From the NCBI GenBank assembly GCA_964036045.1, contig OZ038378.1:180730001-180794000 (forward strand): a stretch of 64,000 nucleotides of DNA. Reading direction: 5' to 3'. Under the pieces are notes generated by a model. That model worked only from the letters and a program-made list of their open reading frames with translations. It searched no databases and was not told the DNA's origin. Made by a program: the position numbers and the translations under genes. Shown here in pieces: positions 18,169-64,000 of the stretch; the first letter of the stretch is position 1, and every line of letters starts with the position of its first letter. This DNA is from Eutreptiella sp. 'Long Island Sound 2002'. Taxonomy: Eukaryota > Protista > Euglenida.

Positions 18169-18393
18169 CTACGGACTGACTGGGATGGGCTCCGGGACTG
18201 GCTCTGGACTGAATACGGTGCCCCCCTGGGGCGTGGAGCTGGGGCCCGGATCCGGGTCCTCCATGCGGCACGTCAAGACCACGCGGCTGGAGAAGGAGCT
18301 ATCATGGGTGTCCAGATACTCGATGGACTGCACGTTGGTGTTGGGCATTCGCGAGAGGTGGCACAGGGCCGGATACGCGAGCGCATTGGGCAC
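18169..18393 (-). CDS. Probable terminal exon (VPNALAYPALCHL...PIPVSP*)
   Basis: ttggcag|GTG in phase 0; GC3-rich; in-frame TAG. A further 3' exon cannot be excluded. Confidence 0.65.
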   Translation of the reverse strand: MPNALAYPALCHLSRMPNTNVQSIEYLDTHDSSFSSRVVLTCRMEDPDPGPSSTPQGGTVFSPEPVPEPIPVSP

Positions 18394-21300
18394 CTGCCAA
18401 AGCGGAGATGTGACGCGACCCCGACCCCTGGACCCGGTGTTCTATGAGAAGAGGGTTGGGCAGGGTTGGGATACAGCCGCCCCTGTGAGTCCGGCGGCCT
18501 CGGAGGTGACCCGGACCAAACCCGGCAAAAAATGAAAGTGGGATTTTTGGAATCAGCGCATCGAGGGGGTTCAGAAAAGTCATCATTTGCCATGTATTTG
18601 GTGAAACAAAATTTTGACCAATTTTCAATGCTCAAAAAAATTTTCGGCGCCAGATGTCATAATGCCTGATTAATCCTGTCCTATCAATTGAGCCCTTTTC
18701 ACGACCCCCCCGCAATTTTTGGGGGGCTCTATGGACCCCCTGTGTGACATTCCGTCTGGTTGTTGTTCCTTTACGGGGCCCTGGACAGTCACCCGTTCTT
18801 CCCTATGGACCCCCTTCCCCCCATTTAAGAACCCTACTTCCCCCGACTGCCCGGTCACCAGACATGAGGGGGGAGGGGGGTCAGGGGTCGAAGGGGGCAG
18901 AGTGGGTGCAAACGCAAATTGGTTGGGCAAGAGGTTGGAGGCCATTGCGACGGGTGCAAACCGGCTGGAGGGCCATTCGGGTCGGATAGCGGCGGGTGGC
19001 ACGGCGGGTCCTAACCTCCGATGGAGGTATCCCCCTCAAATCCCGGAAAAGGTGCGCACACCCGAGGCTGGCAACAGGCACACTGCCGGGGCCTTTATGG
19101 CGAACCCCCCCTGGCGATGACATTGCGGAGCACGCAGCCGAACAGCCTGTGGACACCCCCCCTCTACCCCTTCGCACCCTCATCTCTGTGCACCCGTTGA
19201 GCCTGACAACCAACTCGTTTCTGTCGTCGCATGGACTGGCAATGCCCGGGCACATTGTCGGCCACAACAATCCGGGGGTTGTGGCCGAACACAGGGCCGC
19301 CCATCCCTAGGCCACGAGGGTGTTGCGTGCCGCGCTTGCTCCGTCTTATCCGCAGGGCTCCTTTAAAGCCCCCCCCCCCCCCCCCGGCCCCCGCCCCCCA
19401 GTGGTGCTGAGTGCGTAGAGTAGATGGACACAGGGCCACATGCGCGGATGGATGGGCAACAGCACACCTGAAGCAGGATATTGGAGGAGTCGAGGTGGCG
19501 TGACGGCATCAGCAGCAGCGAAGTGGAGGTTGCGCAGTTGGGCATCTGCAGAGACACCGGCGCACTCTCCTCCATGGCCACATTGTCTATGTGCTCGTTG
19601 CTGTAGAACTTCCCGATGTCCGTGTGGCCGTACAGCGTGGAGGTGATCTGGAACAGGGTGCTGGGCCTGAACAGCACCTCTCCCTCCTGCGATGGGGACA
19701 GAAACAGGGTGGCAACATCCTTCCGCAGGGGGGGGGGGGGGGCTCTGGCACCCAGCAACGGGGCTGACGAAGACGGCAGCAGACGTTCCTCCCTCCCCCG
19801 CTCCCTCCCCCGCCGTCACGCCTTCAGAGCAGTCATCCGCAATCACCGGGGGACCTCAGCCCCCTCCCCCCCTCTCCCCCCCTTGCGGAGAGCAACACCA
19901 AAAGGGCAGGCGGACTTTCAATTGGAGGGCGGGGGGGGGGGGGGGGGGTGATAGAGCCCTCCGGCCGGACCCCCCCCCAAAAGGGGCTCAATTGACAGGA
20001 CCCCCAAAATCCTCCCGGGACTGACCCCCGGCCCTCGGAGGTGACCCAGACCCAAAAAACGGCAAAAAATGAAAATGGGATTTTTGGAATCAGCTCATCA
20101 AGGGGGATCACAAAAGTCATCATTTGCCACATGTTTGGCGAAAAAAACACTAGAAAACATTTGACCAGTTTTAATGCGCAAAAAAATTTTCGGCACCTTC
20201 AGAGCCAGAGTTCATAATACCTGATTAATGGTCCTGTCAATTGAGCCCTTTTCACAGACCCCCCCCCCCCAGTTTTGGGGGGCTCTATTGAGCCCCCCCC
20301 CCCCCCCCCCCCCCCCGCAGTTGAAAGCCCTACTTCCCAAATCCCAAAATTTGATGGAAACAACACCTACCATTGCTCTGACAAGGGCGTTGCTCTCGCA
20401 GGGCGGTGGGGGGGGGGGGGGACTGGCAGGTGGACTCGCACTGGCAAAGGCTCCCCACGGCTCCTTTTTGGGGGGGGGGGGTCCGTGGGGGGGACTCCCC
20501 CAGAGCGTTGCTTGAGCGGAGGTGGGAGGGGGGGCGGGGGTCCAGGGGAGGGAGGGAGGGGGTCTAGGGGGGAGGCCCCCCCCCTGCCGAAATGAACCAT
20601 ATCCACCAGGAATTGCAAAAATGCACCACATTGACCCATTCAGCATATACATTTGTCATAATGTCTGAACACAGGTAATCAAATCATCTTTTTGGGTCCA
20701 TACATTGTGCCCTCACCTAAACACGTCCAGGCAACACAAACACGAAACACAGTGGAATGCTCATTGTTATCAAATTGTTTGCTGAAGATCAATCAGAGTT
20801 CAACTCACCTGAGCTGGACTCACCAATGTCATCCTCTTCTAAACTGCAGTCTTGTCGTGCCATTATGGCTGCTTGTCTTATAAACTCGGACAGAGTTGCC
20901 CTTGGAGTGTTCAGAAAAAGGGTGGAACATGCTTTCTGTGCAACATTGTACGCCTCTTGCCTTCTATTCCCAGTCCATCTATCGTGGAAGCGAAAATAGA
21001 GGGTGGCGTTTATAACGTCGTCGCATTTTGCGTGGGGACTCGGCTGTACCGGGGTGTTAAAGAACGTACTTATGGGACGCTGGGAAATGGTGTCTGCAAC
21101 AGGGGGGAAGAAATGATACAAATGGAGTGACCAAAGAACCCTACTATAGGTGCACCGAAGGCGCGGGAGGAAAAATTTGGCCCAAACGAAAAAAGGTTCC
21201 CAGGACCCTGATTCTCAGGTGAATTAGAGCGGAGGGGGGAGGGGGGGAGGGGGTCCAGGGGAGGGAGGGAGGGAGGCCAGGGGAGAGAGCCCAGCCCCTC

Positions 21301-24300
21301 CCATGCCGGAATGAAAATTAAAGCAACGCCATGGACCCCCCCCCCTCGTGGACCCCTGGGCCCAGCAGATTACGAGCGTGCGCTGGAAGGCCCCCAACAT
21401 GAACCAACGCGCCGACGCGGCACCCCACAGCCACGGCGGAGCAGGCACGCCCCGTTCGCCAGGCCCAGGCGCCACATGGGGCGCCACATCAGGGCAGAGG
21501 GCCGCTTGCTGCAACGGGGAGGGCCCCATGCCTCAACGCACTGGGCTCGCTCCCCCCACACACACCGGCTGGTCACTCGGGAACGCCCACACTGACCGGC
21601 CGCACTCCGGGAATCCGGACGCGGGTGGGAAGCCCGCGCACACACCCCATCCGGCCCCCAAAGCCTGCAGCGCCTCCGCCGCGTCCCCAAACACGGGGCC
21701 ATTGGGGGGCCTGGCCGCACTACCGATCCAGCGCCCGGCAAATCTCTCACATGGGGCGCCTTGCGGCCAGAGGGCCCCGACGGGCAAGTGGGCTTGGGGC
21801 ACAATGCAGTGTGGGATGGCCGCAAATGGGGTCCGCGGGCATTCTTCAGCAACCCAACCCCCGAGATGCCGCTGGCCGACACCGGCGTCCACGAGAGACC
21901 GAACAGCGTACGCGGGAGAGACCGATTCTCTTAATGGAGGCCCTTTGCGTACCAAGCGCAGAAAAGCGGTCAGCGCCCTCGCCTTGTGGTGGCTGACATT
22001 TTGCCCAACTGAGGGATATTTGGGGGGGGCGGGGGGTGCCTCCCCCACACTACACCCTGAACGCCCTCTGTGCAGAGGCATGAAGCCCTTTAGCTCGCGT
22101 CAGGCGGCCCTCCGTAAGGCCTGCTCGACGCTGGATTTGGAGTGCGGCCGGGACCATCGGGGACGGTGCAGCGCTTTGGTCCACGGGGCATTCGTGGGGG
22201 GAAGGGGCGGGCACCCCACTGTGACACGGCGTCAACACTGCAGATGTCATCCGTGAGGCAGAGCCTGCACACAGGGAGTGGGTCCCTTCTGTTCGCCTGC
22301 GGATGCCACCACCGGAGGGGGGCACCGACGGAGGGGGAAAGGGCGAGGGACGGAGGAGGGACGTGAGGGGGGACGGGGGGCACACAGTCAGAGTAGGAGT
22401 AGGAGTAGTGTTGGGAATACTTCATTGGTCCCTGGCCCCCCTTTCCCATCCTCCGTCACTTCTACTCTTTACTTTGAGGTCACATGCGTTGTTTCGGGTC
22501 ATGCCTCGACGGACTGTGCGATAAGGGCATTCGGCGGTGTCGGATGAGGCGCAGCATCAGTGGACTCTCCGGTTCATACCTCCGGAAAGCGGGAACACAT
22601 GCTTATGGACCGGGCGGTGTTGCTCTGCAGGAAGAAGAGGGTGCCTTGGTCCCCTCGGGTAAACTCCTCGGCAACGTCACGGTTGGTAGAGGCACTACGG
22701 AACAAGCAGAAGGGTGCACCCGTGGACAAGGAAGAACACACAGAATAAGAAGCCATCGCCATTCGACATGTCAAGAACTGGGTGTTTCGGGGGCAGAGCA
22801 ACGCGTCAGCGCGTTACACGGGATCGAAGGCACCAACTTCCCTGTTCCCTCGTCGTGCCAGATGCGGGCGGGCTCGGATGGTGCGGCTTCCGCCCACCTT
22901 CTGAAGAATGGCGCCTGGGCGTATCAAGTTTAATGCCACAATATTTGAGTGAGAAAGGGGACCGTGGCGACCAGTTATCCGGCAAGATGGGGGGGCGGGA
23001 TCTAGAAACTGTCGAAAATGGCAAGAATTTGCCATTTTGCGACCATTCTGGGGGGTTTCGGGTGTCTGTCGTTTGCACACACTGTGCGTTCACAGCACGG
23101 CAATCGATGAACTTCCGCTCCTGCTGCTGCTCCTGCTGCTGCTGTTCCTGGCGCTTGTGGTGCTGGTGGTGCTGGTAGTCCTGCTGCTGGTGCTTCCCCG
23201 ACCGCCCTCGTCTCGCAACCGCCTAATTCCGTCCACAGCCCCTTTGTTCGATCGCCAGTAACCGGGTTTACCACCGCGCCCGGCAGCCACGTCCTGTCCC
23301 CCTGCACAGGCCTAAGCTCACGCACACAGGGGTGTCCGCGAACGCCCTGGATCCGCACTACTGAAGGAAGCTCTGGGGCAAACCTGGAGAAAGAAGGCCA
23401 GCACACAGTCTCGCCCGCTTTGTAGCTGCTCTCATCGAACCGGCAATTAATGCCGCGGTACAGTTTCCCCTCGAACTTGGGCAGGGCGAGCAGGGCAACG
23501 TCTGTGTGCCAGATCAAAGGCCGCCAGAAATCGATGCCTACGAAGCAGATCCGGAGAGGCATGCAATTCCCCTGTCCCAATACACACACAGATACACTGC
23601 TGTCTCCCACTCGCCTGCATTCCAGCAAAAGGAGTCGAACATTGCTGGCTCCGAAGTAGCCGAAGGTGAAAGAAGCGTATGCACAAACTGTTCATCGTCC
23701 GGTCGACGTTGTGCCCCGTGCTGCCACAGGGGAGCGCGTGCAGCGCTTGGAAGCAGGGCAGTCTGTCCGGGCCGCCTTTTCAGAGAGCCTTGTTCAATGA
23801 AAGGAAAAAGAAACTGGGGCCGTCCGGTACTCAGCCCCATATTCAGGACTCCCTGACCATTGACAAGCGGTTCCTCGACGGTTGAGTGACTGGAAACCTG
23901 CCCTTGTTGTTGGGCAGGCAGGCAGAACGCGCGTCATCTTCACCCTCCGTCACTTTGGGGTGGGGGGGTGGGATGGTGGGCAACAAAAGGGGCGTTGAGG
24001 GTCTGTGAAGAGTGGCGCACATTTGGTGAGCTCGGTGGCCCTACGTGGATTGGCACCTCCCGTGCACCACCGCGCGCAAACGGAATAGGGGATGCGGGCG
24101 GGACCTTGGGCGTTGTTGTTGCGCATGGCCGCGTTCATGGCCCCGTAGATCTGGTCCCCCCCATCTTCTTCCGGGAGTTCGTATGTGTACACGTACAGCG
24201 CTGCGACGTGCAGTGGGTGCAGGTTGGAGCCCTGCCGCAGCATCTCCTGCCACTTGAGCATCGTGTCCGCCGCCAAAGTGTTGATGGAGTCGCGAAGGAA

Positions 24301-25065
24301 CAAATACCCCTGCAGAAGCGTAGGGCAGGATGGTAACCCCCCCCTTAAAACCCCCCAGGGGTACTATCGATCTGGATTCTTCCAGAAGCCCAGAGCTTCT
24401 GCCAGCTCCACCTCTAGCTCCTCCTCCTCCTGCGGGGGCTGACTTTCATATGACTGCGTGTCAGATGGTTGTGAAATCTCAATCAGCCGCAGTGTTTGTT
24501 CTGTGTGTTCAGTTCCAAGGCACTGGAGGGGGGGGGGGGGGGGGGTCCCGAGGGGGGGGTTAATGGGGAGGGGGGGTTACCACCGACAAGAGCACAGCCC
24601 GTCCCCAAATTGCTCAGCACGACAGGTCACGCCGTTTGCCCAACATGTTGCGTACGTGTGCTGCCGCCTTCAGTCCCAGCTGGCGAGGCACACTTTTGAG
24701 AACAACACGACGGATGCACATGCCCCCGTATCCCCTTGTGGCAGGCGGCACACTTTGTCGCACTGGGAGACGCGCGGGGCTTTGCGGACTACGGACAGAG
24801 AGCCCCACAGCAGATGTGGCCCTTTCTGGCCCCGATGCCCCCCTGATGCCCTCAACCAGCCGCGGGTCCGGACCCCCAAGCCGTTCGACTGCGTCAGGGG
24901 TAAAGCCGCGGCACCCTCGTACACAGCCCGTGGACGGCGCGGAAGAGGATTCAAACCCGAAGTATGACGCCAATGACTGGCAACACATCACAGTTGTGCG
25001 TGACTGCATCGTAAAAGGGGGTCTCACAAATCGGGACTCAAGCCGAACGGCTCTAATGGACAGAT

Positions 25066-25120
<55 letters not shown>

Positions 25121-25128
25121 GTGGGTGT

Positions 25129-25202
<74 letters not shown>

Positions 25203-25501: not shown

Positions 25502-25552
<51 letters not shown>

Positions 25553-25706
25553 TGTGTGTGTGTGTGTGTGTGCGTGGGTTTGGGTTTGGGTTTGGGTTTG
25601 GGTTTGGGTTTGGGTTTGGGTTTGGGTTTGGGTTTGGGTTTGGGTTTGGGTTTGGGTGTGTGCGTGTGTGTGCGAGCGTGCGCGTGCGCGTGTGCGTGTG
25701 CGTGTG

Positions 25707-25752
<46 letters not shown>

Positions 25753-27536: not shown

Positions 27537-30500
27537 GTCAGAGCCTGTCCTAAGTCTATCTTGGACAGATGTCCCCCAGTTTCCCAATGGACCTGAATGT
27601 GTCCCGTGCCTCCGACTGCACTTCTCCCCCTGTCCCTTGCAGGCCTCGGTACCGCGCTGCTGTGCACACACGATCGTATGGAAAGCCCCCCGCACGCCAT
27701 CACATCCCCTGAGGCCGGGCCCCATCCCGGGGGTTTCTGTCCCCCCCCCCCCCAGAGCGTTGCTTGAGCAGGGGGGGGAGGGGGGGCGGGGGTCCAGGGG
27801 AGGGAGGGAGGGAGGGGGTCCAGGGGGGAGCCCCCCCCCCACCCTGCCGAAATGAACCATATCCACCAGGAATTGCAAAAATGCACCACATTGACCCATT
27901 CAGCATATACATTTGTCTTAATGTCTGAACACAGGTAATCAAATCATCTTTTTGGGTCCATACATTGTGCCCTCACCTAAACACGTCCAGGCAACACAAA
28001 CAAAAAACACAGTGGAATGCTCATTGTTATCAAATTGTTTGCCGAAGATCAATCAGAGTTGGACTCACCTGAGCTGGACTCACCAACACCAATGTCATCC
28101 TCCTCTGAACTGGAAGAGGAACCAGAAGAATCTGAGTCGGGTGACGAGTCACCACCTTTTTGACACTGTCTAGCAATTTGTCCCAGGGGACTTCCAGCAC
28201 AGTGATTGGTGTTGTGGGAGTCGCTGGCTGCACAACTACTCGTTCCCTCCCTTCGTTTTTTGGGTTTCTCTGGGACCTCAGGTGCAGGACAGTGCAGATT
28301 TGTGGGGGCTGTGAAAGACAAAAAATACGCATGTTGCAACAGAGCCTGTGTTCATGGCATCTGTGCTGCCCAGCGTGCGCACATGACAGATTGCATGAGC
28401 AAAAACTCATGCGGCAGGCAGCGCACCTCGCAGTCTTGGCGTGCCATTACGGCTGCTTGTGTTATAAACTCATGCAGAGTTGCCATTGAAGTGTTCAAAA
28501 ACAGTGTGGAACATGCTTTCTGTGCCACATTATACGCCTCTTGCCTTTTCTTCCCAGTCCATCTATCTTGGAAACGAAAATAGAGGATCGTGTTTACAAC
28601 GTCGTCGCGTTTTACGCGGGGACACGGTTGGACCGAGGTGCTGAAGAACGCACTTATGGGACGCTGGGACATGGTGTCTGCAACAGAGGGAAGAGAGGTT
28701 GCAGTGGAGTGACCAAAGAACCCTACTATAAGTGCGCCAAAGGCGCGGGAGGAAAAAATTGGCCCAAACGAAAAAACATTCCCAAAACCCTGATCCTCAG
28801 GTGAATTAGAGTGAAGGGGGGAGGGGGGGAGGGGGTCCAGGGGAGGGAGGGAGGGGGTCCAAGGGGGAGCCCCCCCCCCCCCCCTGCCAGAATGAAAATT
28901 AAAGCAACGCCCTTACCACCCCCTCCCTGGTCCCCGTGCCGGTGCGTACAAGCGTGTCCACATACACAACGCGCGGTGGAGGCATCGGCCCCTTTGGGAC
29001 ACAGACCCGTAATGCAGGAAACGGCCCTGTCATGCACGGCCCCCGAATGGGGGACAGCCAATTTGCGGATCGGCCGACGTCAACGACTGAGCGGAGCCCC
29101 CTCGCCCGGGGGATTGTGTGTCGCGGAGGACACAGGCCTATTCAGGTCCTGGATGCTAATGCCAAGGGGAAGGGAGAGGGTTTGCAGGTTAGAGCCTGCC
29201 TGCAGCCGGCACTAGCCCACCCCACCCCCGCCCCACGCGGTATAGCGCGGCGCGACGGAAGGACCGAGGCCGCCGCCTCACACGGGATCTTCGGAGGAGC
29301 GCCCATGCCCAGATTGCGGGCTGCGGGCCTCTGCGCCGTCACCGGAAGGCACAGCTGCTGCCGAGGCGCCCCCTTGTGGCTGCACCCGCAGAGTGGAGCC
29401 CCGCTCCAAGAGGCCACCACCCCGGGCCGGCTGTGCAGCCGCACCCGGCGCCGCGGGCCGTGCCGCGTGCGCCCCATGCCGCCGTGCTGTGCCCCGCACA
29501 GGCAGAGCAGGCTGGTGCGTCGTGTAGTCCGCACCTGCGCAGCGTGGGGCACCGCTGCCAGGCTGTACCCCTCGGTGTTTGTGGCGCAGAGGACACAAGT
29601 GCCCCGTCTGGGAGCCGGCCTCCGCACATCCCTCCCCGAACCCGCAAACGCCTGCCCCAACAATCCTCCTGACCAGGCACATGCCATTGGGATCGAGACA
29701 TACCGCCCGGTTCTCTGGCAAATCCATCACAAACTCCATCGTGCTCTGGCCGGGGACGTACTGCGCGTCGTAGAACTGTACCGTGAGGGTATCAGTGGGC
29801 GCCTGAAGGCCATCGACCATGCGGCTGCCCAAGCCAGTGCTGCCCGCCGGCCGCGCATTTGCCTGGTGACTGGAGGGGCACCTGCGGAGGCCGCGAGAAG
29901 GGCCCGCAGGCACACCCTTCGCGCCGAGGCCCAGGCACAGGTAATGCTGCAGGCCCGGCAGGAGCGGATCCGCGTTCTCTTGGAGCGGGTGTAAGAGTTG
30001 CAGTCGCTGTGGCTGGGAGCAAGGGGGGGCCCAGCGGGAAGGGTCCACCAGGTACGCACTGATCAGGCCCTGCAGTGGCAAGTGTGAACGGGCGGGCGCG
30101 TGGGGGGGGGGGGGGGTGCATGGGGGTGTGCTTGCAAGGCTTCTCCCAGGGAAGTATTAGAACAGGGGGCAGGGGTGGGTCTGGGACCCAAAAGTCTGTG
30201 TATGAAAAATGGACCGACAAGATTTTCCACACGGCAAATTTCGTTTTCTCCCGCTGGTCAGAAGGAGAGGCCAGGGAAGTAGTACAATGGCCGTACACCG
30301 TGGGAGGAGGGGGGGTACCCCTCCGGACCCCTGCCACCCCTCCAGCCATGCCGGCCATGCAATGCGTGGTTCCTTTATCCGACATTGATTGCTGACGTCT
30401 GACTGACAGCTAGTGACTGTGATTGTCTGACTAACTGTAGTCAGACATGATGTTCTGCTTTCTGTTTCAGACACAGTGTGTGTTTTGAGGTTTAACCAGG

Positions 30501-55682: not shown

Positions 55683-58600
55683 AATGGTCGGCAGTGATTG
55701 ACTGAAGGCCCCCGCCATAAGCACTTTCAGCCTTTAGTGCAATCAGTTGTGGATGCGTCATTAAAAGCTGTAATCCACCAAATACAGTGGGCACTTCCAT
55801 GAGGACATCTACACGGCATGACAAACCAAGGGCGGCCCATGCCAAGACTGGACGAACGTCAGGTCGAACCTGAAACGCACAAGTAACTCGTACCTCCGGT
55901 GTCGGCATTCCTTTGGCCTGTGAGACTGGCTGTTTGAGTCGGCTGGCTGTGCGGAAAAGAGCAACTGTTTGTGGGAGCAGAGTGATCCTGCACCCCTGCA
56001 GAAGCAGCCAAAACCCTGAGAACACCTCATGAGCATCGTTGCGTCCCCCACAAGCCGACCCCCTTTCTTGGTTCTCAAGTTGGGGATCTCTGGCTGCCGG
56101 GGGGGAGCCCCCCTGACGGGGGCCAAATGGGGCAGCGCTGTCCCCCCCCCCAACACTCCGGACGCCAACCCGTTGTAAATGACTGCCTGGCACACCCGCT
56201 TTTTTGTTGTCCGGGTCTCGCATTGCAGGTTTTCGCCCCCCCCCCAGATTTCTGTCACTGGGACATGGTGTTGCAGAGGCATAGTGCTGCAGGGGCACAG
56301 CGTCCAGCGCGGGGGCTTCTCTTCCCACGCAGCGGATGCCCCAAAACAATGCCACAGCAACATCATCGCTTTGCTCCGAAGCCGCTGCCCTGCGAGACGC
56401 CACCCGAGACCTGGACACGCTGGACGGCACTGAACTGGGCACGGACGCGCATAGTGACGCGGACCTGCATGCGACGGCTGTCCTGCAGCCGCGACGGCTC
56501 GGAACGGCGCCACTTGATGCGCGCCCAGCGCCAGGCCCACAGGACCAGCCCCACGGCGACGAGGGTGAGGCCCACGATGAGCAGGCACACCTGCCATGAC
56601 GGCGTGCGCTCCACTTCGAGGGCGACCTCGAAGGAGCCCTCCGTCAGGCGGCGGTGGTGGGCGGCGACGGCCGTGCCGGTGGACTGGGCAATGAGAGAGG
56701 GCGAGTGAGAAGGGCGTCAGAGGCCGTGGCAGAGGGAAGGGGCGCGGCCATCGCGGGGGCGTGGCGTGCAGTTGTACAGTGGCAGTACCGTCGCGGCGAC
56801 CCCGAGACAATCGTTCCGGACCCTCGCCCCCGCAGCGTGGGCAGGGGGTTCCAGAGGGGAAGGGGGGGGGGGTCGGGTTTTGGGGGCATTGTTGAATTCC
56901 CCTTTTCTTTCGGATAGGGGGGAAATGGGGGAAGTAGGGAGGAAATCTGTGCCCCGGTCCACAGAGGCCCAAAACCTTTTCGGGCGCCGCTGGGGCCCAA
57001 GTCGGTGGGGGGAGGGGAGGAGCGCGCGACTGTTCCACCTTCCGGACCGAGGCAATCGTAGACCAGACGACAGAGGGTGCCTCGGTCGCACCGCGCGCTG
57101 AGGTAGACGTGTCACTTACCGGTGCACTACACAAGCTTTTCAGGCAGGGTCGCGGTGGCCGAAGGGGTTGGCATACAACAACGGTCCACTCCACTCCAAG
57201 GCCCTCATCGCCATTTCCACCCAGACACAACAATTGGCCATTCATTTGTGATGCTCAGGCCCCTATGACCGCTTTTGGGCAACACTCATTGGTACCAGCG
57301 TTCTACGCCACCCGGGCCTCAGTCGCACCGCGCTACCGCACTGCTTGTACCGCGCGTGAGGCACCCTCACACGCCGAATGGGACACAAACGGATCGATGT
57401 GGTTTCCTTCGTCAAGCAACCGCCGAACGTGGTGTGCTATCAGCGCAGACCTTCGTGCACCTTCTGGGCCCCTGGCGTTCCTGAAGGGACGGGGTGTCTC
57501 CTGCCGGCAATTCACCGCTTTTCACCTTTCGACTGCCGGAGGTCACCCCCCAACAGCCAATGGGTACCCGCCAGTAGTTGATGGCACAGGCAGGGGGGGG
57601 GGGGGGAGGTGCACGGCATTGTGCAGGGGACGTCCTGAGCAGAGCCAAGGTGCAGTGTTGGAGGTGCACGGCGCTGAATTTCCACTGGACCACCGTCAAT
57701 CAACGGCAGGGCAGTCACCGCCAGCCGTTGACGAGGGCCGCAGGCCCAGCACCAGGAGATGCCTAATGCCTGCCCCTCAGGGCCCGTCTGGACCATTCCG
57801 CTGCAACCCCCTCAACTATCGGTCCAAAGGGCTGGAGGGCTGGGGGGATAGGGGGGAACAAAGGCTCGGTCAGAGTGCCAGTGCTTCCGGGCGTACGCAT
57901 TTTTCAGGGAGGGCAGTCCTTAGGGGGCAGAAAAAAGTGTTCCAAAACTGCAGTTTTGCAAAAAGAGACGTGTAGCTCATATATTCAACCATGGTAGGTG
58001 GCGATGGGCGGTTGGCGGATGGCAGTTGGTGGTTGGTGGTTGGTGGAGGTTGGTGGTTGACGGTTGGTGGTTGGCGGTTGGCGGTTGGTGGTTGGCGGTT
58101 GGCGGTTGGTGGTCCCTGGGGGCGGTCCTTAAGGGCGGTCCTTCGAAAAAAAAAAGAAATTTGGTTCCTTAAGGACCGCCCTGTCTTCAGGCCATTGTCT
58201 GCATTGCTTGTCCACAGACGGTGGGGAAACGTAGTTTCCGGAGACGCGACTCGTCCCCCTGCTTCTGTCCCTCAGCGCCCCTCCCATGCCGACACCTCAC
58301 ACGATCGGGACGGGGGGGTGGGGGGGGCTGGTAGTGGGTTCACAGCAGTCTCAATGTCGTGCCTTTGGGGACCACCCCGGGCTGCCCACCAACTTCCCTG
58401 ACCATGCTCCTCATTCCCTGACCGCGCCCCTCCCCTGCGTCCCCAGCCACCACCTGCTCCCCAATAAGGCAGGTGTGCGAACGAATGTGATGTATCATTG
58501 CAGGGTGTTGAGAGCCAGTGAGACTCGGTGACGTGGTGAGGGGCTATTCGCCAGCAACCACCAGCGGTTGAATGCTAACCGGCCGCCGGGGGGCGGCCGG

Positions 58601-60378
58601 TGGGCAATGTGCTGGCTCCGGCGCGGCTGCCCGGATGAGGGGGCACTGGCGGGATACAGCGTGAACGCGAGCCAACAATGTGGCCACAGAACGCGATGGC
58701 TCTCGTGTTTGTGTCCAATATGAGTAGCCGAGGACCATTTTGGGCGAGCTTCAGCACCAAGAACATCAAGCAGCAGGGGGAAATAATGGTGCGCGTGCCA
58801 GCAGTCTTGTCTGTGTCTGTGTTTGTGTTTGTGTGTGTGTATTTTTTTGTTTTTGGGGGGGGCTCCTTTTAAGGGGGGGGGGGGGTCAAGGGGGGGGGTC
58901 CAGCCCCCCCATCCCCCCCCTCCAGTATTGCTGAGTTTTTAGAGGCGCCAAAAGCGTCAGATAAAATTTGTGATTGGCCGAAAGCCCGGAGAAGAATTTG
59001 GCCCAATCACTTGGGGGGGGGGGGGTCCATGGGGGGGGGGGGTGCTGAGTTGTTAAAAGAGCCTTGGGAGTGGCGGGGGGGGGGGGGCTGCATAGTTTTT
59101 TGGAGAGCAAATCCTGTTCTTAAATACCGTCCTGGCACCTACAAAGCCATTACTTGGTACTGCAGCGTGACTTGAAGGCTCGACGCAACGTCAATGACAT
59201 CGGTAGCGCCCACGTCCCTCGGCAGATACGTGCGGATGCACTGGGCGCAGTCCGGGCAGCCGGGGCCGGTGCTGGTGCACGCAGTGCCCAGCATGAGCAC
59301 GAGCATCCCCGTGGACAGCGCGATCACCTTGACCCACAGCCGGACGACTTGCATGGTTGACGTGCCGCCCCCTGTGAGCGCGACGTCCTGATTGCACGTG
59401 CCGGCCGCGGTGGCGGAGATCTGCGCACTGCTCCCGGTCTGCATCGGCGCGCACAGCGGCATCACCATCGTCACCGTGGCCGAGGGCGTTGTCGTCGGCA
59501 CCGGCGTCGAGGACTCGGAGGGAGATTCTGTGGCCCGGCCGGTGCCGGTGGAAGAGCGAGTGCGCGTGCGCGTCGGGGTCCGCGTGTCGGATCCGGTGGG
59601 AATGCTGCTCGGCGTGCGGCTCTCCGTGGAGGTGCGCGTGCGCGTGGACGTGGACGAGGCGGTGGAGGTCGGGGTGGCGGACGGGGTCAGAGGCGGCGTC
59701 TGGGTGGGGGTCGGGGTGCCTTTGATGCTGCAGCGGTACAGCGGGTCCCGGTTGCCACGCCGCGGCGGCCAGAAGGAGGGGTACGCCACTTTGGAAACCC
59801 CCGTCACCTCAGGGAGCTGCCCGAACCAGCGGCAGGACTTGTCGCTGGGCCGGTAGTCCACAGCTGTGCAGCTGGCGATCTGTGGAGTGCAGTGGGCATG
59901 ATGCATCATGTGGCTGCTGTCGGGCATGGCAGTGCGTGTGACAAACTGAAAGGCTGGTAACCACCGCGTACATCGGTCCATAGGGGGGGGGGTCAAGTGG
60001 GGCGTGGGATCCGCAGCAGCCGATTCTGGGGCGACAATCTCTGCACCCATTCTCGGGGGAGACGCGAGTGGACTATGCAGCAACAGCCGTATTGGATGTG
60101 GCGGATAACTTTGAACTCCGCCAAGAACGAATGCCCAAGTTGTTGTTCCACCCATGACTGCTTTGGCGCTGGGAACAGCCAATTAGCCCCTGCCTACAGA
60201 CTGCAAGCCATCACTTGGCCGATCCCCTTGCTGATGGGGGCACCCCCTTTTCCTGAAACAAAAAGGGTTGGGCACGTGTGTGTGTGTGCGTGCGTGCGTG
60301 GGTGGGTGCCAAGGTGTCAATTCCATTCATGCTCAAATTCCGAGGTTCGACAAAACCATGAGTTCTGTGTTTGTGTGC

Positions 60379-60426
<48 letters not shown>

Positions 60427-63400
60427 TGTGTCTGTGTGTGTGATGTGTATGCGTGCATTGCTGCGTTTCCCATCCGCATGGTGACACAAAAAATAAAACA
60501 AATCTGTTTGCAATGCAACTTCACCAGCCCTTCCGGCCCAAGAAGATCATCTCGCTGCGCGCATGGCACACACGTCGTCGCAAACGTCGAAACACGCCGA
60601 ACGGTTGTGGTTGGAGTGGGACAAATAGTGGTGAGGCGTCTCAATGGCCGTGGACGTGGGGTTGGACATCGTTGTGCAGTATCCAGGCATTGTGCGACGC
60701 TTGCGTGCGTCCATTAGCATGATGCCTCCAGGAGACATTTCCAACACATAGCCATGACCACCGAACACGAAGTCACTGCCGTACAGCTTGCCATAATGCG
60801 TGATGCGGGACCCGTCGAACACAAGAGCGTAGGTCCTGCCGACTTGCAGTAGAACCTCGGCCACCGGTCCAGCTTTGAAGAAATAGAGGTGTGCGGTGTC
60901 CATATTATCAAGATCCTGAGGACCGCAAACGGGGTAAAGACTGAGGAAATGCACCAAGAAACCAAACACAGGAAACGGAAACGTTGTGTTGTGCAGTTCA
61001 TGCCATACCACGTCACAGCATCGCACCCCAGCCCATCCCTGGAGAACAACACTTTCGGCATAGAGACCCACTGCAACTGCCTCCTGCACCAGTTCCATTT
61101 GTTTGCAATCACATGCCACACCTCTAAAATGGAGCCTGCTGAGGTGGTAGCCACAGAATACCCGCCGGTCTTCATTTTGCGGTTCGACCCGTCCCGCGCC
61201 CATGACAAGTTGTACATTCCCAGGCTCCACAAAGGCTCATAACTGCTCTCGAGCGTCGCACAAACCCAGCTGCAGTCGGGGGCCACCGCAATGGCCTTCA
61301 CCTTCCATGAAACATCCAGAATCACCTGAACCATCAAAGAGGGTGTCCAACAGCACTGTGATGACCACACACCCATACGTACACGCGCACCCCACACTGC
61401 ACAACACCACACAAAAACACACCACACCGCCCCACCCGACTCCACCCCACCCGACCACACCACACCACATATCATAGTGGTAGAGGGTAGGGAGGTAGGG
61501 AGGGGTGGGGAGGGGTGGGGTACAGTGGGTGTGCTGGGTCCACCACCTGGCCAGGCTGTGACAGCTGCAGCAAATGACCTTTCTGGGGTCCTGGCGGGTC
61601 TCGGTTTGGGGATGCATGAAATGTGAAATGCAACTTCAATCGCCCCCTTGTTGCGTGCGTGTGTGGATGTGAGTGTCCCTACTTCCTGACCGTCTGGCAA
61701 GCGAACAGCTTAAACCAAGGGCCCGGCAAACAGCGGTAAGCACTGGGGGTTGTTGGATCGTCTGCGTCAGTCCTGTTGCGGTGCGGTCGCAATGTTTAAC
61801 CATCCTTTGAAACTGCTAGCAGTCAAGAACCCCAGTTCCAGTTAACTCGCCCATCGGCACCAGCGCCGTCGCTTAAAGAGATGCTTGTGGCGTTCGTATC
61901 CGTCACGTTACGATTCACCCCAAGCGTTTCCAGTGCGTTAACTGAACAAATGATTCCAAGCAACCAGCAAGTAGCATGCGGCAATCCAATGATCCTCAGG
62001 GTGGTGGATAGATGGTTGTATGAGCCACATGTCCCATTCAGCTCCTTTGGTGCAGGGTACTTGAGCAAGACTGCTTCATCGGCGAAGTACTGGGGCCTGA
62101 TGTTGTGTTGCGTGCACCTGTGGGCCACCCCTGTGTAGGCCCGATGCATGTCGGTGGCATTTCGTGGGCCCATGCCCGTTGTGCGGGTGGCGTGCACCCT
62201 GAGGTTCTGGAGCGTGCTGGCCTGTGCGGCACCGGGACCCAGGGTCGCCAGGCCGTGCCAACGTATGTTGCGTGGCGTGGTTAGTGTGCGCGTGTGTGTG
62301 CGCGTTGTGTGTTGTGTGTGTTGAAAAGGGGCGCGCCAATGTATGCGCCCGTGCGTGCAGGGACACCAAGCCAGAACACCGACACGCGGTCAATGACGTT
62401 ACGGCCCCAAACCTGGAACTCCCACGATGTTGTGTTATACAATCGCAGTGGTTTGCCGGGCTCGGGCACCACGGCCCATGGACAGTTTGGGTCGGCCCCG
62501 ACGATCGTCGCAGGGGACGCCCACCACACCCATGGGGAGCTGGGTTCGCCCCGCGGTCGTGCCAAGCGATAATCGTAGAGGAAAGACCCCAGCTGCGAGA
62601 CGCAAACCAAAAACCCGTTGAACACCCGAAAACGATCCCCGCAATCGAATCTGAAAACGAAGGTCCCGTCGTTTGTATACTGCTCCCAGTGGGTTTCGGT
62701 GGTGTGGAGGAACAAGTACTGGGAATCTGGGGAGAACTGGTGGACCACGTTCGAGAAATCGCCCACGGTACCAACACGAGTGTGGACCTGTGAGGGTTCG
62801 GGTGCAGGGGGGTGAGAACATTAGGGTAGGGTTGTTCGCGTGCCGATGTGGGACGGAGCGCCATAACAATGAACAAAAAATGCAAACTGCAGGGATCACT
62901 CCGATGGGGGAGCCTTCACTCCGTTCTCTCACAACCCTTTGCCTGTCTCAAATATGCGGAGAGAAGTACGCCCCAGACTGGGATCGAACCAGCGACCTTG
63001 CGGTTAACAGCCGCACGCTCTGCCGATTGAGCTACCAGGGCTTCTGTGCCCAGAGCGTTGGGCACTGAAACATTGCCTGTAACACAAAAATTCAACTGTC
63101 ACGCTACACCACACATCTCCCAAAACACACATTCTCCATGCCATGCCGAAAGCTACACAATTTGTCTCACGTCCAAACGTCCATGCCACCATCGTTGTAA
63201 ACGTCGACTACAGCTTCGACGTTGTTTCACCTATTCTATGCCTGAGCAACAAGAGCAAGGGGGAAAGCTACGGGGAGAGCTGCACTCACTGCCCTGTGTC
63301 TGTAATGGAATGAGAATATGGCAACTTTACAGTCACGCTCGTGGTCACATGATAGCTCGTTTCAGCCTCTGTTTTTTTGGTGTTATTGTGATTTGGAGCG

Positions 63401-64000
63401 CACTTGGCACAAATGCCTGCCAAAGCAGGCGCCCAGGGTCAGGTGCACACCATTGGAAGGGCCTTCTTCTCTTTGTGTCGCAACCGGTTCCCATTCAAGG
63501 TCAGGTTGACGTTGCCCAAAAACGCAATAAAAAGCCCTGCAGGTGTACTGCAGATTGCTGTATGGGTGCGGAAAGGCATATTATCATTGGGCACTGTAGC
63601 TATTCTGCCCGCTGTATTCCGCTTTTCTCTGATAGTAGGCGTGGCCCAGTGTGCCCATAAAACTGGATGTGTTACAGAGCAATAAGCTCGCCAAGATTCT
63701 TTTTGTACCCCTCCGATTGTACCAGGTATAAAGTGCATCAGGTGGGTGACGTGCGTTAGGCTGTGGGTTGTGTTCAGCTCCCAGGGCCCTCCCGTCCATT
63801 GAGGGTACATCCGGTGGGAAATGCGACCCCTCCCCTGGCAGGCGAGGACCTCCGTGTTGCGGAAGATGCTGTTGGTCCAGGGCAGAATGGTCAAGTTGCC
63901 AACGATTCGTTGGGCCGCGACATCGAAGAGGAAGGCACGGTGCACCCCGACCTCCACCATCGCCGTGACAACGCTCAGATACTGTCCATTGGCGCTGAAC
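18169..64000 (-). CDS. Multi-exon gene, 5'-incomplete: receptor-like 3-TM protein with beta-propeller/PAN/mucin ectodomain and cytosolic LIM-like, ankyrin, 2xWWE and R-S-E ADP-ribosyltransferase domains (over 1,800 aa, about 20 exons)
   Basis: Manual exon stitching. The junctions from 60915 downstream are GT-AG with matching phases, and motifs are restored across them: CFDVCDD|IASCTAVDY, AAEVQ|IQNAVRRG, FRYR|NRSGQW, NNNAQG|IDFWRP, PSFS|SAST, RFPE|EGEVLF. Confidence 0.85.
18490..18740. repeat. Dispersed repeat; a second direct copy lies at about 20030-20295
   Basis: Shared ctcggaggtgaccc...gggatttttggaatcagc...aaagtcatcatttgcca...aaaaaattttcggc. Confidence 0.7.
18740..18802 (-). mobile_element. 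63-bp truncated copy of the same family with an 11-bp TSD
   Basis: CTATGGACCCC at 18729-18739 and again at 18803-18813. Confidence 0.8.
19468..19686 (-). CDS. Exon: ART E-x-E motif (EGEVLFRPSTLFQI) and start of the C-terminal extension
   Basis: cgcag|GAG ... CAG|gtgtgc; 219 nt. Confidence 0.85.
20500..21330. mobile_element. Intronic repeat copy A (internally deleted) with G-rich direct terminal repeats
   Basis: High identity to 27750-28910 but lacks several hundred internal bp. Confidence 0.75.
22580..22694 (-). CDS. Exon: ART S-x-S motif and central strands (SASTNRDVAEEF...GTLFFLQ...SRFPE)
   Basis: ccgtag|T ... GAG|gtatga; 115 nt. Confidence 0.9.
23384..23537 (-). CDS. Exon: ART catalytic R motif (LPKFEGKLYRG...WPSFS)
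   Basis: cgtag|GC ... AG|gtttgc; phases 1 and 2 match the neighbouring exons. Confidence 0.9.
24105..24309 (-). CDS. Exon: helical N-terminal part of the ART domain (ALYVYT...IYGAMNAAMR)
   Basis: ctgcag|GGG ... G|gtcccg; matches the AIxxYT...YxxLNxxLR pattern of ARTC/VIP2-like ARTs. Confidence 0.9.
25073..25200 (+). repeat. (GT)n microsatellite
   Basis: Seen directly in the sequence. Confidence 0.98.
25502..26098 (+). repeat. Compound (GT)n/(GTGCAT)n microsatellite with two (GGGTTT)n arrays (about 25576-25656 and 25778-25828)
   Basis: Seen directly in the sequence. Confidence 0.98.
27000..27532 (+). repeat. Compound (GT)n/(GTGCAT)n microsatellite
   Basis: Seen directly in the sequence. 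Confidence 0.98.
27750..28910. mobile_element. Intronic repeat copy B with a relic ORF (28352-28672, minus strand)
   Basis: Direct homology to copy A; conserved peptide YFRFxDRWTGxxRQEAYNVAQKACSTLF. Confidence 0.75.
29704..29802 (-). CDS. Exon: pre-ART region (APTDTLTVQFYDAQY...DLPENRA)
   Basis: cttcag|GCG ... GCG|gtatgt; 99 nt, phase 0-0. Confidence 0.7.
29914..30012 (-). CDS. Exon: linker (PQRLQLLHPLQENADPLLPGLQHYLCLGLGAKG)
   Basis: ctcccag|CCA ... GGT|gtgcct; 99 nt; GC-rich third codon positions. The following short intron also reads through in frame. Confidence 0.6.
31744..31867 (-). CDS. Exon: WWE-like domain 2
   Basis: ttttgcag|G (phase 2, matches the previous exon) ... CAG|gtattc; YR|NRSGQWDVTSDPQHLPEIQEAV. 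Confidence 0.8.
31989..32350 (-). mobile_element. Truncated copy of the TGTGTGACATTCC family
   Basis: Aligns by eye to 52063-52420 over about 350 bp. Confidence 0.8.
32568..32749. mobile_element. Related short MITE with TIR TTGCGAGAGCAAC and C/G-run termini
   Basis: cccccctcttgcgagagcaac ... gttgctctcgcaaggggcG(n); partial relatives at about 19878-19950 and 20290-20425. Confidence 0.6.
33199..33250 (-). mobile_element. Short truncated copy of the same family, following a long C run
   Basis: tgtgtgacattccgtctggttg...ggacagtcacc. Confidence 0.75.
33724..33866 (-). CDS. Exon: C-terminal half of WWE domain 1
   Basis: gtcag|ATC ... CG|gtatgt; IQNAVRRGSDSLQVKDQAWRLDLHAKTH; ends in phase 2. Confidence 0.85.
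35690..38718 (-). CDS. Retrotransposon ORF2, 3' part: RT core, RNase H, Zn finger and unknown C-terminal extension
   Basis: LDDIRHAFGSV, GIAQGCPVSALIF, YMDD; FVTDGS / IEMY / YTDS (RNase H); CxxC...H...C. Confidence 0.93.
38722..39602 (-). mobile_element. 881-bp insertion interrupting the RT, flanked by a TAA direct repeat, carrying a 207-aa coiled-coil ORF (38729-39352)
   Basis: Removing it joins GTC ATA CCA GTA ACG CAA TTT (VIPVTQF) and fuses the two ORF2 halves in frame; the insert is GC-rich while the element is AT-rich. Confidence 0.85.
39603..41943 (-). CDS. Retrotransposon ORF2, 5' part: N-terminal extra domain, APE endonuclease and start of RT
   Basis: SFNVQ, DIVMLQE, GVAIL, VVNLY, IVGGDFN, LDHF, SDHFP (APE); RPLLNFHTLWKIF (RT). 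Confidence 0.92.
41822..44563 (-). CDS. Retrotransposon ORF1 (913 aa) with a central coiled coil and a C-terminal RS/K-rich tract
   Basis: Long ORF upstream of and overlapping ORF2 by 122 nt; heptad region LDHIKTQHRQAENTIKLQSKQIEELQG; KKRSRSRSKSRSP...SRSRSRSPSP. Confidence 0.85.
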   Translation of the reverse strand: MCQSGSSVNKFPSVHHFLHVPCTDMEHVPYQASLLQLLAHSSDPELQRLLTEYIDLTPAHVYKEAESALPAAFAPGIQVQALCDALRWTTIVGKISYVSSINVLLAPQGYLLTVTAEVMQEKKKQQVEHIPIALARSPALLAHIQVQLPSIKNIVKMWDQTYRKIENSEIKDTFGKLLQIKGQEYKKVNTTLFKNIVLTPMEQSLPVHLKTIWGELQKSGLQCIQEQLFRLPDTVPFTGTATVTRSDYLQIYHHLLAWASDKLAPPHKQNALRNKGIVQAMNQNKAQDIIRQSILEVATEAVFEEAWPGEKPSWITAPTAALLKPKDNYIDLLNSPNLLDMKKTSRTSADLLQALDDGFSQKEEEPLIPEHLTQRMNAQRLETTKADLDHIKTQHRQAENTIKLQSKQIEELQGTIKILQAELQEMRDRSETAELTLPQLTENFANAFAMLVRIRQKASEWEGPPSPSLVDLLKESSPENFTCLPPLHAKYMASVPLVSTFLAVTGIRQDLLPIITALIPEHRPTTVNLLKYLNDTDPVGESPTHNTPQSAQDKTPVPTVKTQIPGSPPMHKLLKWINHQPTEKISGFAKKLHMTVSLNMPEIRNLSPTDLHEQWNTLNMHTTHPKLDHVIKDFFTQAEHETPQDPISTGHTIVKQAEHRNQQAAQTSQSRSSDPAKFPICILVAWNAVMDPPEHDISARILGTALRPVFGKNLCSITDDSVKGTRSFCMLGVSEDGKDQANTPGMTVVSGWRINWKKATKQPWSPWVPRGFHQASYFTPEASHSSGKKKQKKGNDDSSESDQSDDHKNRRESSTKKKENSHKKKRSRSRSKSRSPKRKKNGKKHYSRSRSRSPSPDRRVKDTNPQHFRLPTTSGWQPHQHAQHHWAPQQAPVHNHAWPSTPEQQGWPNPWQP
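44862..44934 (-). pseudogene. Degenerate tRNA (Glu-like) or SINE head in the LINE 5' region
   Basis: A box TAGTAGAGTGG and B box AGTTCGAGTCC at tRNA spacing; stems disrupted. Confidence 0.55.
45365..45440 (-). pseudogene. tRNA-derived SINE-like head
   Basis: ggagcggcctagtagta...ggttcgactcccac; its downstream GC-rich body is also found at about 45158-45195. Confidence 0.45.
45966..46175 (-). CDS. Exon: ankyrin-like repeat and N-terminal half of WWE domain 1
   Basis: tgcag|GTC ... CAG|gtacca; 210 nt; LVEAAATSGHPEVL; FSWQYHEGHGLWQDYPPAAEVQ. Confidence 0.85.
47094..47375 (-). CDS. Exon: low-complexity S/D/K-rich linker
   Basis: cccag|TTG ... AAG|gtgtgc; 282 nt, phase 0-0. Confidence 0.75.
47625..47725 (+). 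repeat. 20-mer minisatellite (CACCGCCACGCACAGTCACG), about 5 copies
   Basis: Seen directly in the sequence. Confidence 0.85.
49281..49311 (-). mobile_element. 31-bp copy of the same family with an imperfect 12-bp TSD
   Basis: Left flank ctgcgtaccccc, right flank ctgtgtagcccc. Confidence 0.65.
49363..49959 (-). CDS. Exon: ankyrin repeat and an aromatic beta-rich domain
   Basis: gtgcag|GGC ... CAG|gtgtgc; 597 nt; SLVCIAASVGNLGAVKLLL; YLYYF...GWCISAHLG. Confidence 0.85.
51358..51927 (-). CDS. Exon: TM helices 2-3 and a split LIM-like zinc finger
   Basis: ttcag|GTG ... GTG|gtatga; 570 nt; CPAC...HMRHALCVHC...YHSKC. Confidence 0.85.
52063..55050 (-). mobile_element. Longest copy of the TGTGTGACATTCC repeat family; holds a CCCH Zn-finger ORF (about 52050-53483) and a tandem duplication of about 435 bp; far end uncertain
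   Basis: Shares its terminus with the copies at 18741, 31989, 33199 and 49281; CRFGDMCKSAWCPLHH. Confidence 0.6.
55612..55678 (+). repeat. (AG)n microsatellite preceded by a G run
   Basis: Seen directly in the sequence. Confidence 0.95.
56465..56683 (-). CDS. Exon: TM helix 1 (WQVCLLIVGLTLVAVGLVLWAWRW) and a basic loop
   Basis: cccag|TCC ... CAG|gtccgc; 219 nt, phase 0-0. Confidence 0.8.
58005..58182 (+). repeat. (GGYGGTT)n heptamer array followed by the inverted repeat GGCGGTCCTTAAG/CTTAAGGACCGCC
   Basis: Seen directly in the sequence. Confidence 0.8.
59154..59879 (-). CDS. Exon: PAN second half, S/T/P-rich mucin-like stalk and Cys-containing domain
   Basis: cacag|ATC ... CAA|gtaatg; 726 nt, phase 0-0; IASCTAVDYRPSDKSC followed by TPTPTQTPP... 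Confidence 0.8.
60375..60442 (+). repeat. (GC)n/(GT)n microsatellite
   Basis: Seen directly in the sequence. Confidence 0.9.
60574..60915 (-). CDS. Exon: end of the beta-rich region and first half of a PAN/apple-like domain
   Basis: ctcag|GAT ... GAC|gtgtgt; 342 nt, phase 0-0; ends in SACFDVCDD. Confidence 0.75.
61050..61325 (-). CDS. Probable propeller exon (VILDVSWKVKAIAVAPDCSWVCATLES...)
   Basis: Acceptor ttcag|GTG in phase 0; AIAVAPD blade-like motif; donor uncertain. Confidence 0.5.
61850..62117 (-). CDS. Probable ectodomain exon (CTQHNIRPQYFADEAVLLKYPAPKELNGT...)
   Basis: Open frame with NxT sequons (NGT, NVT, NAT); both boundaries uncertain. Confidence 0.4.
62530..62787 (-). CDS. 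Exon: beta-propeller-like (VHTRVGTVGDFSNVVHQFSPDSQYLFLH...)
   Basis: Acceptor cacag|GTC; FSPDSQYL blade motif; the donor position is ambiguous by 2 nt. Confidence 0.65.
62969..63041 (-). tRNA. tRNA-Asn(GUU)
   Basis: 73-nt cloverleaf: GCCCTGG/CTGGGGC acceptor stem (two G-U pairs), GCTC/GAGC D stem, TGCGG-CTGTTAA-CCGCA anticodon arm, GCTGG-TTCGATC-CCAGT T arm. Confidence 0.9.
63451..64000 (-). CDS. Exon running off the window: beta-propeller-like segment (FSANGQYLSVV...KALPM)
   Basis: Open frame to the window end; FSxNGQYL blade motif; donor ATG|gtgtgc in phase 0. An internal intron cannot be excluded. Confidence 0.6.

Follow-up and report, generated by a model that had tools for sequence, protein, structure and literature searches.

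Gene structure in the window

The stretch of DNA analysed here, referred to as the window, comprises 64,000 nt of Eutreptiella sp. 'Long Island Sound 2002' (C1:180730001-180794000 of the 2.28-Gb assembly) and carries on its minus strand the exons of a gene for a predicted surface protein, in which a large ectodomain is joined through three transmembrane (TM) helices to a zinc finger, a WWE domain and a C-terminal ADP-ribosyltransferase (ART) domain of the R-S-E type. Using an intronless paralogue on C11 as a guide for placing the junctions, we could model 18 exons between 64000 and 18169, each bounded by AG and GT, with 17 introns of the GT-AG type between them (Table 1). The spliced frame within the window is 5,331 nt long (1,776 codons), contains no internal stop and ends in a TAG codon at 18171-18169 (minus strand). 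For one donor, two positions are possible (49435 or 49363), the phase being 0 either way. The model is 60% identical to the C11 paralogue over 1,707 aligned columns. An earlier reading of the window, made from the sequence alone, had proposed about 20 exons in one frame with 18169 as its first coordinate, and the model bears this out, with the stop codon falling at that very base.

The closest match of the exon that encodes the catalytic Arg (ART exon B in Table 1) was located by a genome search at C11:55181356-55181508, is 86% identical, and lies within an uninterrupted frame of 3,524 codons. This paralogous frame, which furnishes the strongest evidence for the arrangement, is 10.6 kb long (C11:55180816-55191387, minus strand) and has the parts of the window gene in unchanged order. 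When it was compared with the window by tblastn, 17 high-scoring segment pairs (HSPs) were obtained, running in strict order from 63999 to 18244 and covering paralogue residues 1827-3506. With 80 kb of upstream flank included, 29 colinear HSPs were found, reaching back to paralogue residue 140 at ~39.6 kb past the window end. Since the HSPs follow one 3,524-codon frame in strict colinearity, a chance assembly of exons can be rejected, and because they continue into the upstream flank, only the C-terminal half of the gene lies in the window. Sequence comparison thus supports the view that the exons in the window are the 3′ half of one intact gene. Its full extent is ~85 kb with ~30 exons and a protein of ~3,400 aa, ~1,800 further codons being found in exons up to ~39.6 kb beyond base 64000. 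As a correction to the earlier reading, the gene does not begin inside the window; its start, a signal-peptide-like segment, is placed ~39.6 kb past the window end. The earlier proposal that the ectodomain and TM exons belong to the same gene as the ART exons is supported by the colinearity with a single paralogue frame and by the fact that at least 23 loci, as well as transcripts of relatives, join both parts. In comparison with the paralogue, the ratio of nonsynonymous to synonymous substitution rates (dN/dS) amounts to 0.44 overall, and the ART domain alone gives 0.18.

The paralogue has no introns, while the window copy has ~30 exons; at the flanks of the former, neither a leader remnant nor a poly(A) tract was found as a sign of a processed retrocopy. 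The upstream half of the window gene contains a 200-N assembly gap (C1:180809743-180809942), which adjoins a stretch without a match to paralogue residues 1290-1427.

Table 1 Exons of the gene in the window, in the direction of transcription
Exon content	Position in window	Strand	Evidence
Exon cut by the window end (extends to ~64158 outside); start of propeller-like ectodomain	63850..64000	-	tblastn, paralogue 1776-1877; donor GGAG/gt
Propeller-like ectodomain	62413..62787	-	cag/GTCC...CCAG/gt; 52% identity to paralogue 1875-2005
Propeller-like ectodomain	61122..61325	-	Paralogue alignment, junctions
End of propeller-like region; start of PAN-like Cys motif (ACFDVC, 60597-60580)	60574..60915	-	Paralogue alignment, junctions; 0 Pfam matches
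Rest of PAN-like motif; mucin-like linker 59717-59469; first half of juxtamembrane beta-sandwich	59154..59879	-	Sandwich from paralogue model
End of beta-sandwich; TM1 56596-56531; basic loop, predicted cytosolic	56447..56683	-	Hydropathy, model, junctions
TM2 51927-51856; short outer loop (predicted); TM3 51840-51760; zinc finger 51738-51403	51358..51927	-	64% identity to paralogue
Helical, ankyrin-like region, no assigned fold	49435..49959	-	62% identity to paralogue 2654-2822; 0 Pfam matches
Low-complexity linker	47094..47375	-	Phase-0 acceptor and donor; LLHKWLKAHLRKK matches paralogue PKWLKGFHLRK
WWE, first half	45966..46175	-	66% identity to paralogue 2940-3013
WWE, second half, after the 12.1-kb intron	33724..33866	-	Paralogue alignment, junctions
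Post-WWE linker	31744..31867	-	Paralogue alignment, junctions
Conserved pre-ART region (TDGL.AP, FYDAQY)	29704..30069	-	62% identity to paralogue 3095-3225; several columns invariant in family alignment
ART exon A, N-terminal helices (YVYTYE, IYGAMNAAMR)	24105..24309	-	77% identity to paralogue; junctions
ART exon B, catalytic Arg in LYRG; ends WPSFS + AG (start of S-x-S)	23384..23537	-	86% identity to paralogue
ART exon C, completes S-A-S; ends RFPE (start of E-x-E)	22580..22694	-	Pfam ART 17.6 bits for the exon alone; junctions
ART exon D, EGEVLF completes E-x-E; end of ART fold	19468..19686	-	Junctions, PDB alignment
Last exon, C-terminal tail and TAG	18169..18393	-	58% identity to paralogue 3454-3506

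The ADP-ribosyltransferase domain

From the spliced frame, it is clear that all three ART motifs named in the sequence-only reading are present on the minus strand, two of them being formed by splicing. The catalytic Arg is that of LYRG (23463-23452). FSSAS spans 23391..22688 across the intron 23383-22695, where WPSFS + AG/gt is joined to tag/T GCC to give S-A-S, and EEGEVL spans 22582..19672 across the intron 22579-19687, where RFPE GAG/gt is joined to cag/GAG GGA.

Sequence comparison with the PDB retrieved the Vis toxin (E = 4e-6), Tre1 and rat ART2.2. The alignments bring the YRG, S-x-S and E-x-E motifs into register; LYRG, FSSAS and EEGEVL fall on the YRG, STS and EAE of Vis. The Pfam profile PF01129 (cutoff 22.3 bits) scores 51-53.5 bits on the paralogue, which is 81% identical to the window gene over this domain, and lies above threshold in 36 of 37 family members. 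The Arg, both Ser and both Glu residues are each at least 90% conserved among these members (n = 37). We have also modelled the paralogue from WWE to ART with AlphaFold (pLDDT 81.7, pTM 0.84). The top Foldseek matches of this model were XopAI, Vis, HopU1, Tre1, ART2.2, Certhrax, ExoS/T, C3 and SpvB, which are all R-S-E ARTs, the probability being 1.0 for XopAI, Vis, HopU1, Tre1, ART2.2, ExoS and C3. Taken together, the Pfam assignment, the PDB and Foldseek matches and the conserved catalytic residues confirm, at the level of sequence and model, the earlier identification of an R-S-E mono-ADP-ribosyltransferase, with R, S-x-S and E-x-E intact. The E-x-E motif specifies Arg as the acceptor in the R-S-E clade, and transfer to Arg side chains is the specificity predicted here.

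Membrane topology

Three hydrophobic helices (TM1 to TM3, Table 1) were found by hydropathy in the window gene and its paralogue, and the AlphaFold model of the paralogue membrane region (pLDDT 77.6) likewise contains three long helices following a beta-sandwich, in keeping with the number given before. Both the window gene (MARGWALHARVMAGAVLLLS…) and the paralogue begin with a signal-peptide-like segment. When K+R minus D+E is added up for 21 members, the segment preceding TM1 has a net charge of −17, loop 1 of +123, loop 2 (7-8 residues) of −4 and the segment following TM3 of +42. Furthermore, the density of N-x-S/T sequons in the ectodomain exceeds that in the tail by a factor of 3.5-6, and the WWE and zinc-finger domains of the tail are of kinds that are normally intracellular. 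Since the three helices, the charge bias, the WWE and zinc finger in the tail, the signal-peptide-like N-terminus and the sequon distribution all agree, the ART is predicted to lie in the cytosol. The topology proposed in the sequence-only reading, with the N-terminus outside the cell and the C-terminus with the ART in the cytosol, is thus a prediction supported by both sequence and model.

A fourth hydrophobic stretch at 59333-59280 reaches a Kyte-Doolittle value of 2.07 in the paralogue. It was considered as a further TM helix and rejected: the AlphaFold model shows a beta hairpin within the sandwich here (pLDDT 80-92), and its counterparts in 20 relatives contain 2-7 polar or charged residues where aligned.

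Zinc finger, WWE domain and ectodomain

The zinc finger directly following TM3 has a conserved eight-ligand pattern, C-x2-C … H-x2-C-x2-C-x2-C … H-x2-C, with LIM-like spacing. With the Pfam LIM profile (PF00412), the window exon reached E = 0.35 only, and none of 21 members was matched. As to the LIM label used earlier, the spacing of the Cys/His ligands agrees with it and is conserved, the Pfam score falls short of the threshold, and the element is best called a LIM-like zinc finger. A profile of the TM and zinc-finger module gave chance-level matches only when compared with the PDB, and no homologues of the module were detected in Pfam or the PDB.

The WWE domain of the window gene is split by a 12.1-kb intron (45965-33867). 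The Pfam WWE profile (PF02825, cutoff 21.1 bits) matches the paralogue marginally, with 21.2 bits (19.6 bits in a longer query), and 23 of 37 relatives with a best E of 3.8e-8, so that the WWE label can be retained. The ankyrin label is not confirmed: neither the exon 49959-49435 nor the paralogue has a Pfam ankyrin match, and the resemblance is at the motif level only. The 12.1-kb intron also harbours a long interspersed nuclear element (LINE; window 35690-44563, minus strand, the same strand as the host gene), whose open reading frames (ORFs) encode a 913-aa product without assigned function, a 922-aa APE-type endonuclease and a 995-aa reverse transcriptase.

As to the ectodomain, its mucin-like stretch (83 aa, 71% Ser, Thr and Pro) is present as described before. 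The juxtamembrane beta-sandwich seen in the paralogue model has a weak resemblance to CUB and further domains of the jelly-roll type. The Cys motif in the window has no Pfam PAN match, and the upstream half of the paralogue gives weak, sub-threshold matches to PAN_4 (E = 4e-4) and PAN_1 (E = 3e-3). The propeller-like region has no Pfam match either, and a feature search of the ESM-Atlas linked it to WD40/PD40 clusters at 0.79, below the lead-exceeding level. Among the earlier ectodomain labels, mucin is therefore retained, while PAN and propeller are not found by Pfam and go back to the Cys motif and a weak language-model match. The ectodomain shared by the window gene and the C11 paralogue measures ~2,250 aa, is mostly without assigned domains and is unlike the ectodomains of other members.

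Family and relatives

Counts of family exons in the genome are lower bounds. ART exon B has at least 138 matches, many of them inside very long open frames, and 95 or more were obtained for the exon that encodes TM2 and TM3 together with the zinc finger. At no fewer than 23 other loci, a single open frame holds the TM module and, in the expected order and at a distance of 2.0-2.7 kb, the ART. Alignments of public predicted proteins with the window model extend over more than 1,000 residues and show ~30-40% identity, and the top protein matches are E. gracilis transcripts in EukProt. Members derived from transcriptomes include EG_transcript_47, 49, 79, 162, 168, 218 and 529 (Euglena gracilis, EukProt) and E. 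longa GGOE01047417, which are 35-43% identical to the window gene over the cytosolic part. The order in EG_transcript_47 is EGF, TSP1, RCC1 propeller, three hydrophobic helices, LIM-like Cys/His motif, WWE and ART; because transcripts of this type span the ectodomain to the ART, the chassis is made as a single mRNA in relatives. The ectodomains of other members contain EGF/TSP1/RCC1, MAM, C2 or PAN. These sequence comparisons show that the chassis of three TM helices, zinc finger, WWE and ART, carried under varied ectodomains, defines a large family.

Near-identical members are arranged in tandem in three places. An array at C20:17.80-19.08 Mb has at least 20 equal-score matches to the TM module, mostly ~30-120 kb apart, and two further arrays (C12:23.96-24.23 Mb and C20:1.19-1.29 Mb) have four copies each.

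A search beyond the genome with the region from the TM helices to the mid region found no protein of 950-3,024 aa. The Entosiphon and Mastigamoeba proteins in EukProt show, by sequence, that the ART subfamily extends beyond Euglena. That of Entosiphon sulcatum (1,074 aa) is a soluble protein with RWD, WWE, ankyrin and ART in this order, combining WWE with an R-S-E ART outside the context of the membrane module. In that of Mastigamoeba balamuthi (1,231 aa), VWA and Dictyostelium-type Cys repeats are combined with a hydrophobic stretch rich in Ala, Gly and Val and with a PF01129 ART at the C-terminus; this amoebozoan ART may have become linked to a membrane independently. This arrangement of VWA, Dictyostelium-type repeats, possible TM helix and ART hints that the idea of a membrane ART arose more than once.

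In full-text literature searches we found no description of such proteins, the published catalogue of eukaryotic ART architectures being outside their scope, and the string 'ribosyl' is absent from the E. gracilis transcriptome paper. This agrees with the earlier remark that no characterised protein has this architecture, with the addition that uncharacterised members are already present in public transcriptomes.

Comparison with known systems

In itself, the ART domain is unremarkable for PF01129. The unusual features are its position at the predicted cytosolic end of a very large surface protein with three TM helices, the WWE domain with which it is paired, and the membrane and zinc-finger module without recognisable relatives. 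Vertebrate members of PF01129 (ARTC) are ecto-enzymes, small and either glycosylphosphatidylinositol-anchored or secreted. ART1 and ART2.2 share with the window ART the PF01129 assignment, the R-S-E triad and a very similar FPxExEVLxP motif, and ART2.2 matches in both sequence and fold; unlike them, the window ART ends a ~3,400-aa 3-TM protein, is predicted to be cytosolic and adjoins a WWE domain. The best structure and sequence matches (Vis, Tre1, HopU1, XopAI, ExoS/T, C3 and SpvB) act in a cytosol, as is predicted here. These bacterial R-S-E toxins and effectors are, however, delivered into another cell, whereas the window gene is a eukaryote's own, contains introns, codes for a membrane protein and has a large family of paralogues. 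To our knowledge, the eukaryotic R-S-E ARTs known so far act outside the cell, and the bacterial ones are injected weapons.

A WWE reader is found beside an ADP-ribose writer in PARP7, 11, 12, 13 and 14, and the window gene resembles these in having WWE next to such a writer; otherwise we know of WWE beside PARP-clade writers and E3 ligases. PARP16 is a tail-anchored ART of the endoplasmic reticulum membrane with a cytosolic catalytic domain (PMC10389827), and is similar in being membrane-anchored with its catalytic domain in the cytosol. The writers in PARP16 and the WWE-containing PARPs belong to the H-Y-E/PARP clade and are not known to have a ligand-binding ectodomain, in contrast to the R-S-E writer of the window gene.

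The transmembrane receptor enzymes that we are aware of signal by phosphorylation, dephosphorylation or cyclic nucleotides. Receptor kinases, guanylyl cyclases and nucleotidyl cyclases share with the present family a variable ectodomain, a membrane span, a cytosolic catalytic domain and lineage-specific expansion, receptor-type nucleotidyl cyclases having been described in Euglena and trypanosomatids (PMC6366073). In contrast to these, the output here would be ADP-ribosylation, and the membrane module consists of three helices and a zinc finger. The likeness is one of analogy only, homology to receptor enzymes not having been found.

Proposed function and alternative explanations

In our view the window probably (we would put it at about 0.65) holds the 3′ half of an intact gene for a 3-TM surface protein with a cytosolic ART that acts as an ADP-ribosylating receptor enzyme. 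Binding of a ligand at the ectodomain would alter the state or clustering of the membrane module, and this change would switch the ART on. The ART would then move ADP-ribose from cytosolic NAD+ to Arg residues of cytosolic targets or of the protein itself, and the adjacent WWE domain may read the ADP-ribose-containing mark, ADP-ribosylation thus being the output of the putative receptor. Whether the whole family with its chassis of three TM helices, zinc finger, WWE and ART forms a new, ligand-controlled class of receptor enzymes, with ~100 paralogues as a sensing repertoire for the environment or other organisms, is a more tentative matter, and we hold this extension as possible but somewhat doubtful. 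If the receptor assignment is true, ADP-ribosylation would join the list of direct receptor outputs. The system would be a tractable one, Euglena being culturable and the ART domain small, and the questions it opens include how mono-ADP-ribosylation might be gated by a ligand, what its substrates are, and why euglenids have expanded the family to ~100 copies. The 3-TM and zinc-finger module, having no recognisable relative, is of interest in its own right.

Several points weigh against this assignment. Expression of the window copy, activity of its ART, control by a ligand, the substrate and the cellular location are all putative, and the topology is a prediction from sequence and model. The window ART was scored against PF01129 exon by exon only, the best exon giving 17.6 bits, which is below the cutoff. 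Outside the ART, dN/dS is only moderately below 1 (0.73 for the TM helices and zinc finger, 0.66 for the mucin-like stretch and sandwich). A search of public runs yielded DNA runs and three tiny runs, with no RNA for the window copy found in it, and none of the public proteins matching the window gene is transcript-derived.

As the main alternative, the same architecture could serve a different end. By analogy with the use of TIR/SARM1-type NADases and bacterial ART toxins, the family might be a surface repertoire for recognition or defence (towards non-self, prey, pathogens or kin), in which the ART is an effector that consumes NAD+, for example, or shuts down a process in the cell upon engagement. 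The nearest solved relatives are indeed toxins or effectors (Vis, Tre1, HopU1, XopAI and ExoS), the family has very many members, some in tandem arrays, whose ectodomains differ greatly while the chassis stays constant, and the dN/dS values show relaxed constraint on the ectodomain and membrane module relative to the ART. Copy number, arrays, varied ectodomains and toxin-like relatives fit such an effector repertoire as well as they fit a receptor, and the present data do not tell signalling and effector use apart; a WWE reader next to the writer, however, suits regulated modification as much as a kill switch, and we regard the effector explanation as unlikely on the whole. It could also be asked whether the architecture is real in the family while this particular paralogue, the window copy, is silent or in decay. 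The lack of any RNA run or transcript-derived protein found for it, its long introns loaded with repeats and a LINE, and the dN/dS of 0.66-0.73 in some segments would be consistent with decay. A frame of 1,776 codons that stays open over 18 exons, canonical splice sites at all 17 introns, the low dN/dS of 0.18 in the ART with every catalytic residue kept, and an upstream half that is likewise colinear with the paralogue make this quite improbable.

The remaining alternatives concern the link between ectodomain and ART. Euglena trans-splices a leader onto its mRNAs, and the E. gracilis leader occurs in 5,458 exact copies in the genome (the dinoflagellate leader was found neither in the window nor in the genome). 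Internal trans-splicing, for which the 12.1-kb intron could host an acceptor, might therefore yield two or more mRNAs, one for the ectodomain and TM helices and another for a soluble WWE-ART protein, so that not all products would have the membrane link, and soluble WWE-ankyrin-ART proteins do exist in Entosiphon. Nevertheless, neither the frame nor the intron phases are broken between the TM exons and the ART, both parts share one frame in the paralogue and at no fewer than 23 loci, and transcripts of relatives span both, which renders separate messages very improbable. Finally, the ART could face outward through a fourth TM helix or an inverted topology and be an ecto-enzyme, as the vertebrate PF01129 members are. 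The hydropathy of the stretch at 59333-59280 in the paralogue would speak for a fourth helix. This stretch is, however, modelled as a beta hairpin and contains polar or charged residues in 20 relatives, loop 1 and the segment following TM3 both have a strong excess of positive charge, and the tail is depleted in sequons and built of intracellular WWE and zinc-finger modules; we consider an outward ART extremely improbable. A silent copy, separate mRNAs and an outward ART are thus less likely because of the points that stand against each of them.

Sequence repeats and public contigs

Three public proteins that are 99-100% identical to window exons were considered as transcripts and rejected, being ORF calls on genomic contigs that run from exon into intron. 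Contigs from DNA runs over 18312-24311 are likewise genomic; they run through introns, contain repeat-driven joints but no spliced ones, and have no bearing on expression. Short dispersed repeats at 18512-18911, 19312-19511 and 19912-21311 reach summed depths of 10^4 to 6 × 10^5 in these contigs, and, lying in the last introns, they account for hundreds of false 'joints'. Within the 5.4-kb intron 29703-24310, long (CA/TG)n and related microsatellites lie in the segment 25000-27600 and give rise, on either strand, to spurious open frames of 200-340 aa that read 'HTHTHT'. Repeated occurrences of a Pro/Gly-rich pseudo-ORF motif (…PPSLPWTPSPPPP…) are located at ~20.6, 21.3, 27.9, 28.9 and 58.9 kb.
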